Shown: in pieces, positions 18,376-64,000 of the stretch
Layout: every line of letters begins with the position of its first letter
Numbering within the stretch: the first letter of the stretch is position 1
Assembly: GCA_965112735.1 (NCBI GenBank)
Contig: OZ218956.1
Span: 682,001 to 746,000 of the forward strand
DNA from: Phaeosaccion multiseriatum
Lineage: Eukaryota; Protista; Ochrophyta, other classes
Length of the DNA stretch: 64,000 bases
Direction of reading: 5' to 3'
The notes under the pieces: model-generated
Databases searched by the model: none
Told to the model about the DNA's origin: nothing
The model's input: the letters and a program-made list of their open reading frames with translations, nothing else
Translations under genes and position numbers: made by a program

Positions 18376-18615
18376 TCGACCCCTGACGCGCTATCGCCCA
18401 CATTCGCGATAGCGCGCTATCGCCCCCCCACGCCCCCGATAGCGGAAGCGGATCGGCTGGCGCCGGCGACAGCGGATAGCACGCCCCAACAACCCCCCCC
18501 CCCCGCAAAGCCGGCTGGCGCCAGCGGATAGCGTGCCGGCTGGCGCCGGCGATAGCGGATAGCGCGCCGGCTGGCGGCGGCGATAGCGGATAGCGGATAG
18601 CGTGTCAGGGGTCGA
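18376..18615. mobile_element. 240-bp MITE (family A) with 20-bp TIRs and TAGTAG flanking duplication
   Basis: Left tcgacccctgacgcgctatc / right gatagcgtgtcaggggtcga (1 mismatch). tagtag at 18370-18375 and 18616-18621. Internal ~29-bp gccggctggcgccggcgatagcggatagc repeats. Confidence 0.85.
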
Positions 18616-57338: not shown

Positions 57339-59741
57339 CGACAACAGGACCAGTTCCAGTTGGAGGGGTGTGCCGGGGCTGCGCGAGAGTAACCACGCGA
57401 CGCCACTGACCTATCCGAGTACCCAATCATGACCTCCTGCTTCCCGTCGATGTGCCCGCGGTACCAAGGCATGCTCCACAGCTCGTCCATCGTGGCGGAG
57501 CTCCCCTCCAGGTCGCTGAGCGTTTCGAAGAGAGGCACCACACGCATGTCCCAGTCCAGCTTGGCCTCCTTCTGCAGCAACTTGACCCCCAACACGTCAC
57601 TGGGTGACGTGGCCATGCTAATCACGTACGCCCCTAGTGACTCCTCACCCAACTTGGCGATGGCATCAAAGGTGCCCAGCGTGTCCACGACAATGCTGTC
57701 GAAGTCCAAGTCACCCTCCTTCAAGTCTCCAAAGCTCTTTGAGAGCAGCGGGCGTTTGCTGTTGAGCTCCTTTATCAACCACGTCTGTCTGGTCTTTTCG
57801 TCCCACTGACTGTAGCTGCCAACGCCAAGGTGCCGTGTGATAGCATCAAGGGCTTCGGTATGACGCGTCGACTCTTGCCTGCACATGTACGGTGGTGTGT
57901 GGGGAGACTTAAGGCCTGGCATTTCCCAAAGAGGGGCCATATCTGACCTGTGGATCGACTACTAACCTGACGTCCAAAGGAATCAACGACAGCCCGAAGC
58001 AGCGCACGCGTCGAATCAAGTCCTGCAACGTCGAGAAGGAGGGGGGAGAGGGGGAGGAGGAGGAGGAGGAGGAGGAGGAGGAGGACGACGACGACGACGA
58101 CGACGACGAGGAGTCAAGCTCTGTGTGTGCTTGTTGACCTTACTACTTCATGAAGCCCCCGCCCTGCCACTCACCAGCAAGCCCCCGTTGGCCATCCCGA
58201 GCTGGCCAGTGCTGGTGAGAGAGTCGTAGAGCAGTTTGAGCTGGTCCAGCACTTCCTCCCTTCCGTTCAGGGGCAGAGCCTTGACGTCAAAGGGCATGTC
58301 TCCCGCCAGCATGGCCGCGCACTTGGCGATGGTCTCATCGAGCTTAGACTCCAGCTCCACGAGCACGGCTCTGTACGGCTCGCGGACAGCGCCAACGCGT
58401 GCTCGGAGCTCAGGCGAGCACTGATTCAGAAAAGACACAGCATGATTCAGAAAAGACGAAGCGGAAGTGCAAAGAGGGGTGAAAGCAGCAACACGCCCTG
58501 GGTCCCACCTTGCACCTTACCTTTGTGGTGGAGAGCTCCATGCGCAGCACACTGACATCCCTCTTGAGCAGACTGGCGGCTTGCCACCGGGCCTCGAAGC
58601 TGACTCTGCAGGTGATCTGCGGGGGACGGGAGAGAGAAGGAGGGGCATGAGCAGGGGCACGCGGAGGAGGCACATGGAACCGGGGAGGCAAAAAAAGCGT
58701 ACCTCTGGCGTGACGTTGGGGTTGCCGTCCCGGTCTCCGCCCATCCAGCTGGCAAACACCACAGGCGCCACGTCGGCGGGGAGGGGCTTGCCGAGCTTGT
58801 CTGTCAGCGTCTTGTCCACCTTCCGCAGCCACGAGGGAACAGCGTTCCACAGCACCTGCTCGATGACTGCCATACCAGCTCGCGCCTCGTCCTTGGGCGA
58901 CGGCTTGACTCGGCGAACCTCGTCACTGTTCCAAATACTCTCCACCGTGGAGTTGAGCTGCGAGTGCAGCTCCGCCACTTCGACATTGGTCAGATAGCCG
59001 GCACCGGCGTCTAATTGCTGCAGAATATTGCCAATCTTCTTATGCTTGACGAGCAGCGTGCGACGGTTCACCTCCGTGGGGTGCGCTGTCAGCACAATCT
59101 CAACCTTTTGCCGCGCAATGGCATCTAACATGGCCTCCGAAGACGGCGCCTCGCCCGCCATGGCCTGAAGCTTGGAGATGGTCCCCAAAGTGGTGTCCCC
59201 CCTCTGCGGAAAGGCATCTCCCTCGTTCACCATGGCTCGCAGGCGCCGAAGGCGATGATGGGACTCGGCCGAGTTTGCCAGAGAAAAGAAGTGGGTGAAG
59301 GCCTTAGACACCCCCAAACTCTCTTCTGCCGACAGGGTCTTCACTTTCTCTGCCAAGAGCCCCAGGTTTTCTTCCTTTCCATCCCTCCACCCTCGGGCCA
59401 GCAGCCGCATGTCCTCTACGTTCTTAAAGAGGCTGTCTCCTCCGTGCTTCTGGATGGTGTTGCCCAAGATCGCCCCCAGCGTCTTGACATCCGCCCGGAG
59501 AGGCTTGTCAAGCTCTGCCTTGCATACCGCGAATCCTCGCTGCTTTATCCATTGAGGTCTAACGATGCGTTTGAGAAGGTGCGGGAAAGGGGGGAGGCTC
59601 AACACAGAGCCACGAAAAAGGACAACAGCAGCCACGCACGCACCAACTTTTCGCCTTCTCTTTTCGCTTCACGTACCTAGCCGAAGCCAAGAAGCCAGTC
59701 GCTCTCGCCCTGCTACTGCTACTTGCACCCAAACGCAGCAT
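55478..59741 (-). CDS. PEPC: Phosphoenolpyruvate carboxylase with mitochondrial-type presequence, multi-exon
   Basis: VLTAHPTE; [12 protein letters not shown]; LDVRQES; VVPLFET; QEVMIGYSD|SAKDAG; [12 protein letters not shown]; RVTEQGE; [12 protein letters not shown]; [10 protein letters not shown]. Confidence 0.97.
57243..57345 (+). repeat. (CAA)n microsatellite in PEPC intron
   Basis: Direct reading. Confidence 0.85.
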
Positions 59742-60069
59742 CGTGCTCAGCGGTGAGCAGCACCCAGTAGCAGGAGGATGCACACACGAACGAACGAGAA
59801 GGAGGGAAAAAAAATGCAAATATGAATTTCAGGGGGGTCGGGGTCACACACACACACACACAGGATATACACTTACACAGGATCCACCAAGGATCAAGGA
59901 TTAGATCAAGATGATAGTCGGCTCCAGACTGGCCTAGAAGCCTATATACTCTAGGCCCTAGGCCGAGCGGCCTACGCCCGCTCTAGGCCTAGGCCGGCGG
60001 CCGTTGGCCGCTCTAGGCCGGCCATTTTTTCATTTTTTCTCCCTAGGCCGGCGGTTCTAGGCCTAGGCC

Positions 60070-60219
60070 TCGACCTATCTGATTAGTAATTACGGCCGGC
60101 GCAGCCGGCCTGATTACTGATTATGACCGGCGCCAGCCGGCCTGAGTACTGATTATGCGCCAGCCGGGGGCTGATTACTGATTACGGCCGGCGCACACCG
60201 TAATCTTGTCCAGGGTCGA
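60070..60219 (+). mobile_element. Family-A MITE-like unit, left copy
   Basis: Starts tcgacct (degenerate TIR) and ends atcttgtccagggtcga. 60133-60214 is 77/82 identical to 61522-61603. Confidence 0.7.
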
Positions 60220-61478
60220 GAGGGAGGGAGGGAGGGAGGGAGGGAGGGAGGGAGGGAGGGAGGGAGGGAGGGAGGGAGGGAGGGAGGGAGGGAGGGAGGG
60301 AGGGAGGGAGGGAGGGAGGGAGGGAGGGAGGGAGGGAGGGAGGGAGGGAGGGAGGGAGGGAGGGAGGGAGGGAGGGAGGGAGGGAGGGAGGGAGGGAGGG
60401 AGGGAGGGAGGGAGGGAGGGAGGGAGGGAGGGAGGGAGGGAGGGAGGGAGGGAGGGAGGGAGGGAGGGAGGGAGGGAGGGAGGGAGGGAGGGAGGGAGGG
60501 AGGGAGGGAGGGAGGGAGGGAGGGAGGGAGGGAGGGAGGGAGGGAGGGAGGGAGGGAGGGAGGGAGGGAGGGAGGGAGGGAGGGAGGGAGGGAGGGAGGG
60601 AGGGAGGGAGGGAGGGAGGGAGGGAGGGAGGGAGGGAGGGAGGGAGGGAGGGAGGGAGGGAGGGAGGGAGGGAGGGAGGGAGGGAGGGAGGGAGGGAGGG
60701 AGGGAGGGAGGGAGGGAGGGAGGGAGGGAGGGAGGGAGGGAGGGAGGGAGGGAGGGAGGGAGGGAGGGAGGGAGGGAGGGAGGGAGGGAGGGAGGGAGGG
60801 AGGGAGGGAGGGAGGGAGGGAGGGAGGGAGGGAGGGAGGGAGGGAGGGAGGGAGGGAGGGAGGGAGGGAGGGAGGGAGGGAGGGAGGGAGGGAGGGAGGG
60901 AGGGAGGGAGGGAGGGAGGGAGGGAGGGAGGGAGGGAGGGAGGGAGGGAGGGAGGGAGGGAGGGAGGGAGGGAGGGAGGGAGGGAGGGAGGGAGGGAGGG
61001 AGGGAGGGAGGGAGGGAGGGAGGGAGGGAGGGAGGGAGGGAGGGAGGGAGGGAGGGAGGGAGGGAGGGAGGGAGGGAGGGAGGGAGGGAGGGAGGGAGGG
61101 AGGGAGGGAGGGAGGGAGGGAGGGAGGGAGGGAGGGAGGGAGGGAGGGAGGGAGGGAGGGAGGGAGGGAGGGAGGGAGGGAGGGAGGGAGGGAGGGAGGG
61201 AGGGAGGGAGGGAGGGAGGGAGGGAGGGAGGGAGGGAGGGAGGGAGGGAGGGAGGGAGGGAGGGAGGGAGGGAGGGAGGGAGGGAGGGAGGGAGGGAGGG
61301 AGGGAGGGAGGGAGGGAGGGAGGGAGGGAGGGAGGGAGGGAGGGAGGGAGGGAGGGAGGGAGGGAGGGAGGGAGGGAAGGAGGGAGGGAGGGAGGGAGGG
61401 AGGGAGGGAGGGAGGGAGGGAGGGAGGGAGGGAGGGAGGGAGGGAGGGAGGGAGGGAGGGAGGGAGGGAGGGAGGGAG
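60220..61478 (+). repeat. (AGGG)n tract, ~1.26 kb, ~315 units, a single variant near 61378
   Basis: Direct reading. Confidence 0.97.
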
Positions 61479-61603
61479 TCGACCCTGGACAAGATCATCT
61501 GATTCTGATTACAGCCGGTGACCAGCCGGCCTGATAACTGATTTTGCGCCGGCCGGGGGCTGATTACTGGTTACGGCCGGCGCACACCGTAATCTTGTCC
61601 AGG
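61479..61603 (+). mobile_element. Family-A MITE-like unit, right copy
   Basis: Starts tcgaccctggacaagat (exact inverse of 60203-60219) and ends with truncated TIR atcttgtccagg. Confidence 0.7.
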
Positions 61604-62260
61604 CCTAGGCCGGGGGGGCTGCGCCAAAAATAGGCCTAGGCCGGGGACCTGCGGCCCCCTCTAGGCCTAGGCCGGGGGCCTGCGGCCCCCCTAGGCCGGC
61701 CGAATTTCGTCTCTAGGCCTAGGCTTCTAGGCCAGTCTGGAGCCGATGGTAGGATCAGGGGGGGGCCAAGGCCTTGGGGGGGGGATGCAGTCCTCCTCTT
61801 CTTCCAGTTTCCTTGTCCGACACCCTTGACCCCGGGGCAAGAGGAAGGTTGTGGTCATTGTGGTAGTCCCAGTATGAGGAGGAAAGGAGGGGGGGGGGGA
61901 GGAAGGCATAAAAAGAGTAAAGTTTCCCTTTTCCCTCCATACTTGGCTGCAGCGACTCCTCTTGCTAGTTCGTACAGCAGCAGTCCGCCACGACACCACC
62001 GACCACACTCGCTGCTCTACGCAGAGGGCTTCCTCTGTACCTTACTAGGCCGAAAGTAACGTCAAGAAACACGCGCGCGCCCACAAACCCGGGGGGAAAA
62101 AAAAACTAAATGACAAACGGCCAACGCGTGCTCAGCTTTCCGTCTTCTCTTGCGCGAGCGAGGACACTGGGCAGCCAGTGCTAGCGTGCTCCGGTTTGAC
62201 TAGCCTGGGTGGAGGGGAAGGAAGGCAGCTAAGCTGCTTTTCCCGGCTGGGAATTGGTGA

Positions 62261-64000
62261 ATGATGTCTTATGAGGGCCTGCCCACAGAGAAACAGGCCA
62301 TGGCAGCAGCAGCAGCCGTGGCCGCGGCAGCAGCAGCCTCAGCCTCAGCGCCCACGGGTGCTGCAAATGAATTTTCCAGATCGATCCATCTTCCGCCAGG
62401 CCACATGCTGGCCGCTGCTGATTCGGCCGAGTTTGAAGATGACGACGATGAAGACGACGACGAGGAGGACGGGAAGGATACCGAGGGCAAGGCGGGGGGC
62501 AAGGAGAAGAAGAAGCAAGTCAAGACTCGCTGGTCTCAGGGCGAAGAGGAGGTGCTAAAGAGGGGGGTGGAGCGGCACGGGCTGCAGCAGTGGAAGCTGG
62601 TGGCCAAGGACCTACCCGGCAAGACTGATATGCAATGTTTCCATCGTTGGCAGAAGAAGTACAACAATGGAAACAAGGGACCGTGGTCGGCGGAAGACGA
62701 CGAGAAGGTGGTGAGATTAGTGGGCGAGCTAGGAGCGAGAAAGTGGAGTCAGATTGCGTCGAACTTGCCAGGACGGACGGGCAAGCAGTGCAGAGAGAGG
62801 TGGCACAACCATTTAAATCCGCACATCACCAAGAGGGCGTGGACCTACGCTGAGGATCGCGCCATTCTCGAGTTGCACCAGTCGCGTGGCAATCGGTGGG
62901 CGGAGATTGCCAAGATGCTGCCGGGACGGACGGACAATGCCATCAAGAACCACTGGAACTCCAGCATGAAGCGCAAGGTAGGTCGGACCGGGGCAGAGCT
63001 CCGCTAGTCTCTTTGGCCTAACTCAGTGTTGTTGCTGCGTACACAGGCCGAGACAGTCCTACTCTCCACCACCTTGAACTGGGCGAGTCCAGAATGGGCT
63101 TCTTACGGCTTCAAGAACATCATTGACATGGCTGTGGCGGCGGTCAGGGGCACGATTACTGTGCACAACCCGAACGAGGCCCCGACTCGGAGAGGTGAGA
63201 CCCCCACGCCCCCCCTTCTCCCCCCCCGGCCTGTCTTATGTTTGTTGTGCCGTTTGTTCTACAGGCCGGCCCCCTCGCAAGCGTAGTCCCAGTGAGGAGC
63301 GCCGCTTCAACGAAAAGAAGGCGGAGAAGGCAGAGAAGGCGCGCCTGAAGAGCGAGAAGGAGGGCAAGGCGGACAAGAGCAAGAGGGGCAGGGCGGCAGC
63401 CCCTCCACTCGCTGCCTTGGAGAGCACCAGAAGCAGGTCGTCGGTATTCACACATTCCGCCAAGGAGAATATCCAGCCTGCTGCACGCGCGGCACTGGGG
63501 TCCTTGTCCTCCACCGGGCCCCCCGCCGGTCCAAAGCAGTACGCAGAGGAGGGCGACACACACCAACCCAGTGCGATAACGCAAGGCGGGTCGGTGGAAG
63601 ACGAAGCGGCTCGACTGTTGCACCTACGCCTCCCCGCGCCGCATTTGGAGCGTGACCAACTGCAGCAGCAGCACAATTACTTTGACGTGCAACAGCAGAT
63701 GCAGATGCAGCAGCACCAGGATAAAATGGACCACCTGCAGCAGCAGCAGCTGCCTCGGCACCAGACGGCCCACCAGCGACAAGTGACGCAGCACCAACAT
63801 CAAGAGTATTGCCGCCTGGAGATGCAGCAGCAAATGGATCAACAGCAACAACAGCACGGTTTGGGGGGGCTTCCCCCAAAGCAAGCACAACGACTCTTTC
63901 CGAATGTGACACAGCAGGAACAAGACTACCAGTATCATCAGGGGCCGCACGACGCTTTCTGCGAGGACTTGGACTCTACTCAGGAGGTGATGATGGCCCA
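62261..64000 (+). CDS. Three-repeat MYB (R1R2R3) transcription factor, 3' end beyond window
   Basis: R1 RWSQGEE...[12 protein letters not shown]; R2 KGPWSAEDD...[17 protein letters not shown]; R3 AWTYAED...[24 protein letters not shown]; then spliced exons and a Q-rich region. Confidence 0.95.

Follow-up and report, generated by a model that had tools for sequence, protein, structure and literature searches.

A nest of two miniature inverted-repeat transposable element families enclosing an (AGGG)n microsatellite in Phaeosaccion multiseriatum

Composites bounded by two copies of a transposable element are familiar from the Ac/Ds macrotransposons of maize. In bacteria the TIME-COMPs are composites bounded by two copies of a MITE, or miniature inverted-repeat transposable element (PMC4133298). 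Repeats may also be part of a MITE itself, as in DTC84 of the clam Donax trunculus and the pearl-like elements, which are tandem-repeat-containing MITEs (PMC3879986), or may surround it, as in the Mutator-like Ac-mMITEs of pineapple, which insert into (TA)n and are flanked on the outside by the repeat (PMC8449440). The element considered here spans 1,829 bp (59918-61746) of a 64,000-nucleotide stretch of the genome of the ochrophyte Phaeosaccion multiseriatum (contig OZ218956.1, positions 682,001 to 746,000 of the forward strand; hereafter the window, to which coordinates without a contig prefix refer). It consists of an outer MITE, here called O, that encloses two copies, units A and B, of a second MITE, here called M, and a long (AGGG)n tract between them. 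The family and its combination of features are new, i.e. a MITE-pair composite with a microsatellite as cargo, nested in a sister MITE that amplified it; the individual mechanisms are all known already.

Comparison with the described systems brings out both kinship and difference. Like DTC84, the element is a non-coding, high-copy "cassette" in which inverted-repeat arms enclose internal repeats and a microsatellite, and its repeat number is so variable that nearly every copy is unique. There is, however, no sequence relation to DTC84, whose core repeats are its own and whose target duplication is putatively AA. The present element has a 6-bp target site duplication (TSD) and an interior made of two copies of another MITE and a tetranucleotide repeat, and its outer element also occurs in an empty version. 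The tight tie of a MITE family to one microsatellite motif and the frequent clustering or nesting are shared with the Ac-mMITEs. However, the repeat is carried internally as cargo, and the outer flanks of the rebuilt O copies described below are diverse, unlike those of elements of the Ac-mMITE or Micron type. As in the TIME-COMPs and the Ac/Ds macrotransposons, two direct copies of a small element appear to have moved the intervening DNA as a unit, and one target duplication encloses everything. In contrast to both, the cargo is a microsatellite and not genes, only one composite insertion is documented, and the later spread went by way of the ends of the host MITE instead of those of the composite.

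The element is very probably one of about 90 copies of a family of non-autonomous, cut-and-paste DNA transposons that share its nested structure. The genome searched was nuclear (67 Mb in 22 contigs, ~60% G+C). Across the whole of it, the 27-base terminal inverted repeat (TIR) of O, with up to three mismatches allowed, gave 184 matches (97 forward and 87 reverse) as against none for the reversed control; the first 100 matches listed were all perfect, and the TIR is perfect in most copies. When both arms of O were used as queries, dozens of loci distributed over the contigs were recovered at 84-100% identity, and rebuilding copies from the retrieved loci, with overlapping ones merged, yielded 33 complete copies. 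These lie in unrelated flanks, 25 of them with perfect 6-bp TSDs and three with perfect 7-bp TSDs, and the mean pairwise identity of their arms is 97.2%, so the family is young. The (AGGG)n core is present in 33/33 copies, and its strand with respect to the arms never varies. The family thus shows the traits of a MITE: TIRs, a TSD of fixed length at unrelated sites, high copy number, homogeneity and lack of coding sequence. The initial annotation had described a composite, non-autonomous transposon carrying a microsatellite capable of forming G-quadruplexes (G4), and this is borne out; neither the TIRs nor the inner units, whose copy number it had proposed to determine genome-wide, are single-copy. 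Of the 25 perfect 6-bp TSDs, 10 consist of at least five pyrimidines in six on the AGGG-reading strand and none is correspondingly purine-rich (a comparison made post hoc). Taken as a whole, these TSDs show no significant pyrimidine bias (15 vs 10, p = 0.42; Wilcoxon p = 0.19), and oriented insertion into pyrimidine-rich targets is only a hint.

Many copies retain the ancestral layout in full, with the order from left to right O left arm, TAGGCC, A, (AGGG)n, B, TAGGCC and O right arm. O is a MITE of ~280 bp with a 27-bp TIR that starts TCGGCTCCAGAC, doubled CTAGGC words and 7-bp GC hairpins, and M is a MITE of ~130-200 bp that has TCGACCCTGGACAAGAT as its TIR and combines doubled GATTAC-type words with GC hairpins. 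The first 12 bases of the two families (TCGGCTCCAGAC vs TCGACCCTGGAC) are identical at 8/12 positions, and every difference is a transition. Unit B of the fullest copies is a complete small MITE with TIRs of 17-19 bp (TCGACCCTGGACAAGAT...), doubled GATTAC-type words and GGCCGGC-loop-GCCGGCC hairpins; unit A is a B-type element lacking 11 bp inside its left TIR. The two inner units had been called MITE-like from the window alone, and both prove to be copies of M, whose termini have 313 matches genome-wide. They stand in direct orientation and bracket the cargo in the manner of a composite transposon. The initial annotation could assign the architecture to no described superfamily; it does not represent a new superfamily design, since two MITE families with a common building plan are nested in it. 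Nesting in the reciprocal sense is seen at C1:2931273-2932954 (L021 272-1953), where a solo M-like MITE without AGGG holds an O copy within its word array. A partial duplicate of the right part of this M-like element lies ~200 bp downstream.

One TSD surrounds the whole A-(AGGG)n-B block, and a matching empty site is present in the genome. In 10 of the 13 copies in which this could be assessed, the inner block has TAGGCC to its left and to its right, and in the full copies neither A nor B has a duplication of its own, their flanks being TAGGCC/AGGGAG and AGGGAG/TAGGCC. In an O copy without the block, three TAGGCC are predicted between the left and the right anchor, as against four in filled copies. 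A genome-wide search for the predicted string gave two exact matches, at C4:1592428 and C13:1470797, and a third, at C16:1632498, that lacks one base; the control gave no match. The C4 match lies 34 bp away from a perfect O TIR. Because both anchors are exact in only 20 of the 33 rebuilt copies, the true number of empty O copies is put at ~5.

The cargo is an ordinary genomic microsatellite that was not made by the O family. Overlapping matches to (AGGG)n number 80,525 at six units and 73,947 at seven units, and pure runs of at least 24 bp (at least six units) number 6,578, with a mean of 17 units; these make up ~0.68% of the genome and occur about once per 10 kb. The family contributes ~3.8 such runs per copy, roughly 5% of the total, and roughly 18% of the AGGG repeat units, the latter figure being extrapolated from a biased sample. 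The initial annotation had left undecided whether the element carries the microsatellite or generated it; the 6,578 runs in the genome speak for carriage. Related MITEs have access to such runs. A 414-bp related MITE with the TIR TCGGCCCTGGAAGAGG lies inside the AGGG core of the family copy at C2:1937005-1938779 (L005 540-953), where it is flanked by a perfect TSD, GAGGGA, on the G-rich strand; landing of related MITEs in AGGG runs therefore does occur. M also appears away from O, as plus/minus pairs of its termini ~200 bp apart at C5:102749-102961 and C3:5047058-5047255.

The most economical account of these findings is that two M copies inserted in one genomic AGGG run and that the pair then moved together with the repeat as a composite. 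The two copies would presumably first have come to flank a genomic (AGGG)n run. A-(AGGG)n-B would next have entered O as a single unit, duplicating TAGGCC, a step to which the target duplication and the empty sites speak directly, and an 11-bp deletion in the outer TIR of A, probably later, would have fixed the cargo in place. The loaded O then spread to the ~90 sites, mobilised in trans by way of its own perfect TIRs, with the 6-bp and occasionally 7-bp duplications seen at its copies, and the repeat expanded and contracted separately at each site, as the differing cores show, presumably by slippage or unequal exchange.

Several observations weigh against this account. Only three empty O copies were detected (~5 estimated), and the independent life of O is thus thinly documented. 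The variant left end of A has no match in the genome outside the O context and the composite is seen at no second site; since this variant occurs only inside O, capture as a composite rests on one insertion event. No autonomous partner with O TIRs was found, the one 6.4-kb TIR pair being an interrupted family copy, and tract lengths in the assembly are possibly imprecise. At C3:1258621-1266238 and C4:155765-161621, M termini are clustered over 6-8 kb together with A-type junctions and a lone O TIR, all known by their positions only. Such clusters may represent composites outside O, or else copies that are giant or nested several times over.

An origin of the repeat in situ is the alternative that survives best, although it too is unlikely. 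A single M would have inserted in O with duplication of TAGGCC and would then have been tandemly duplicated, and (AGGG)n would have been born between the two copies, e.g. during gap repair from the AGGG already contained in the M terminus (CCAGGGTCGA), and have expanded before O was amplified. The TSD and the empty sites fit this course of events as well as they fit capture, the terminus of M does hold AGGG right beside the junction, and the confinement of the composite to O is as would be expected. Tandem duplication in situ has moreover taken place within the family: the copy at C2:2158253-2160369 (L015/L034) has the layout A-core-B-core-B, whose additional unit arose by tandem duplication of core, B and 21 bp of the O right arm and not by a new insertion. 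However, both the birth of a microsatellite and a duplication are needed, while 6,578 AGGG runs already exist and related MITEs demonstrably insert in such runs, as in the C2 copy with the 414-bp element. In addition a whole module and several substitutions distinguish A from B, more than the divergence from copy to copy within the family. Expansion of a spacer between tandem copies, which the initial annotation had offered as one of two explanations of the layout, is accordingly possible and less parsimonious than capture of a preexisting run.

The other explanation offered there, a MITE that targets AGGG, is largely refuted and must be considered very improbable. It would have O carrying, or sitting in, an AGGG tract and M inserting independently at both of its edges. 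The related MITE found within a core with the TSD GAGGGA, and some O insertions in CCCT-like targets, lend it a measure of plausibility. The empty O copies, however, lack A, B and AGGG together and have exactly one TAGGCC fewer than the filled copies, and A and B are without TSDs of their own. Of the 313 M termini only 55 adjoin AGGG, a number that the O family by itself roughly accounts for, and the one readable solo M-like copy (L021) is without AGGG. Least probable of all is an assembly artefact or plain segmental duplication in place of a mobile element: long pure microsatellites are error-prone in assemblies, and a pair of copies on C9 and a triplet on C5 are truly segmental duplicates, yet one architecture recurs at ~90 loci with differing flanks and its own TSD at each.

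The length of the core is highly unstable. Among the 33 copies it ranges from 116 to 2,321 bp (median 688 bp), the longest cores being the purest, and the window copy, at 1,256 bp, has the seventh longest. The C9 pair, with flanks that are 99.3-99.9% identical and the same TSD, has cores of 900 vs 580 bp, and in the C5 triplet the cores measure 452, about 470 and 176 bp. Segmental duplicates of one insertion thus differ in core length, which must therefore change after insertion. In a tree based on the arms, cores longer than 1 kb occur in at least six branches, beside sisters with short cores. The possibility that the 17-bp inverted repeat bordering the tract drives its expansion was considered and rejected, as the cores of a subfamily that has lost the left TIR of B are just as long, reaching 2,321 bp. 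Judged from its base sequence, the (AGGG)n tract of the window copy should offer the canonical G4 motif (runs of three G with 1-nt loops) ~78 times over, and as a perfect homopurine mirror repeat it would also be capable of forming H-DNA. The core of one family copy, on C11, contains an embedded block of ~17 units of the telomere-type repeat TTAGGG (C11:2432211-2432307; L018 3027-3123), possibly left behind when telomerase healed a break in this G-rich tract.

The enzyme that mobilises these elements was sought in several ways. The window encodes no transposase for the element. A Pfam NHL search for a transposase gave three unrelated matches only, open reading frames (ORFs) of at least 220 amino acids in 160 kb of copy flanks included none that looked transposase-like by eye, and neither the O TIR nor the M TIR had a match in metagenome scans. 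A search for autonomous copies with the same termini, as the initial annotation had suggested, was likewise empty. The only long TIR pair, of 6.4 kb at C9:215018-221463, was rejected, being a family copy interrupted by a 5.8-kb long terminal repeat (LTR) retrotransposon. This retrotransposon (C9:215553 to ~221350; from L052 2038-3235) has 250-bp LTRs with TG..CA ends that recur ~5.5 kb apart at many loci, and it is present in at least 15 near-identical copies genome-wide with open frames of up to ~1,800 amino acids; the C-terminus of its integrase has a chromodomain-like tail of the Ty3/gypsy chromovirus type, as judged by eye.

Some indication of the enzyme comes from the termini. The window contains, at 18377-18615, a 239-bp MITE of a sister family with a TIR starting TCGACCCCTGAC and a perfect 6-bp TSD, TAGTAG, whose interior of doubled GATAGCG words beside GCCGGC hairpins follows the same plan as O and M. 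O, M, the family of this element and that of the 414-bp element in the C2 core have the terminal motif TCGRCYCNNGA in common and do not differ in TSD length, so that a single transposase lineage probably serves all four families. The 6-bp TSD of the O family differs from that of the Drosophila P element, which is 8 bp long. The known superfamilies with TSDs of 6 bp do not fit: Dada has a 6-7-bp TSD and no TIRs and inserts in small-RNA genes (snRNA/tRNA) (PMC3706591), in contrast to the 27-bp TIRs and unrelated targets found here, while IS3EU/GingerRoot combines its 6-bp TSD with TA..TA termini, where those here are TC..GA, and Polinton, also with a 6-bp TSD, is large and self-synthesising (PMC10045372). 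O and M add two families to the TC..GA-ended elements with 6-bp TSDs, and their transposase lineage may be undescribed.

If the capture account holds, the family provides a natural example of a eukaryotic MITE pair that moved intervening DNA as a composite and for which the empty site is still in the genome. It likewise presents a MITE as a vehicle by which a microsatellite with the potential for G4 and triplex formation was copied to ~90 loci, many of them near genes. Dispersed tracts of unstable length (116-2,321 bp) furthermore amount to many independent replicates for the study of repeat expansion. The disparity between loaded O (~90) and empty O (roughly 3-5) raises the question of whether the cargo made O successful, either through the M units, as extra transposase-binding words, or through a G4- and H-DNA-prone (AGGG)n tract that raised excision, gap-repair copying or target capture. 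This must be regarded as quite doubtful, and the pyrimidine-rich TSDs (10 vs 0) are a weak hint in its favor. If true, transposition would be enhanced by a microsatellite that forms structures, and promoters, e.g. in the spacer occupied by the window copy, would be seeded by the family with G4 tracts on the kilobase scale.

That spacer separates two divergent genes and is 2.6 kb long, of which the element makes up 1.83 kb. On the minus strand lies a PEPC gene (58517-59635; Pfam PEPcase, E = 1.4e-68) whose first exon ends at 59635, and on the plus strand a MYB-like gene (62261-63007) identified by eye from the translation of its ORF. The parts of the window copy are collected in Table 1.

Table 1. 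Parts of the nested element in the window
Feature	Position	Strand	Basis or remark
Outer TSD, left copy, TGATAG	59912..59917	.	Read from sequence; one mismatch vs right copy
Outer TSD, right copy, TGGTAG	61747..61752	.	Read from sequence
Outer MITE (O), left 27-bp TIR	59918..59944	+	100% complementary to right TIR
O right 27-bp TIR	61720..61746	-	Inverted-repeat pair with left TIR
O left arm: TIR and doubled CCTAGG/CTAGGC words beside 7-bp GC hairpins	59918..60069	+	Single-strand DNA fold z = -4.5
Left TAGGCC (6-bp duplication from entry of inner composite into O)	60064..60069	.	Family comparison and empty O sites
Inner unit A, MITE copy of family M; right terminus abuts repeat	60070..60219	+	Fold z = -3.5
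(AGGG)n cargo, 314.8 units, 99% pure, one AAGG variant unit	60220..61478	+	Tandem Repeats Finder, period 4
Inner unit B, second M copy, left 17-bp TIR intact	61479..61603	+	Fold z = -6.3
O right arm	61604..61746	+	31-bp repeat, 3.2 copies

The features that the initial annotation had read from the window are all present where it placed them. Besides the outer TIRs and the (AGGG)n tract these are the CCTAGG-rich subterminal repeats of 30/31 bp (59949-60019 and 61601-61697; Tandem Repeats Finder), the direct 82-nt units (60133-60214 and 61522-61603), which are 94% identical (77/82), and the inner inverted repeat of 17 nt (60203-60219 / 61479-61495), which is 100% complementary and touches the AGGG tract on both sides, with GAG at both junctions. 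It had also denied the element any coding capacity, and rightly so: the only ORFs are those over the tract (60182-61498 on the minus strand and 60206-61534 on the plus strand), which are translations of the repeat as LPPS and REGG. The interior of unit A has doubled GATTAC words and GGCCGGC hairpins, and its left TIR shows the 11-bp internal deletion. Unit B has a deletion within its internal array and lacks the final 5 bp of its right terminus; by comparison with the full copies, a 9-bp deletion at the B/O boundary took this terminus together with part of the right TAGGCC. The array deletion and the boundary deletion are private to the window copy, as is a T-rich duplication of ~10 bp in the left arm. 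Folded as single-strand DNA, the arms and units are far more stable than shuffled sequences (z = -3.5 to -6.3), with the exception of the O right arm (z = -1.7). By arm identity the closest relatives of the window copy are those at C12:1381624 and C8:2442235 (99.3% each), and in the tree based on the arms it pairs with the C8 copy, whose core is 1,399 bp long.

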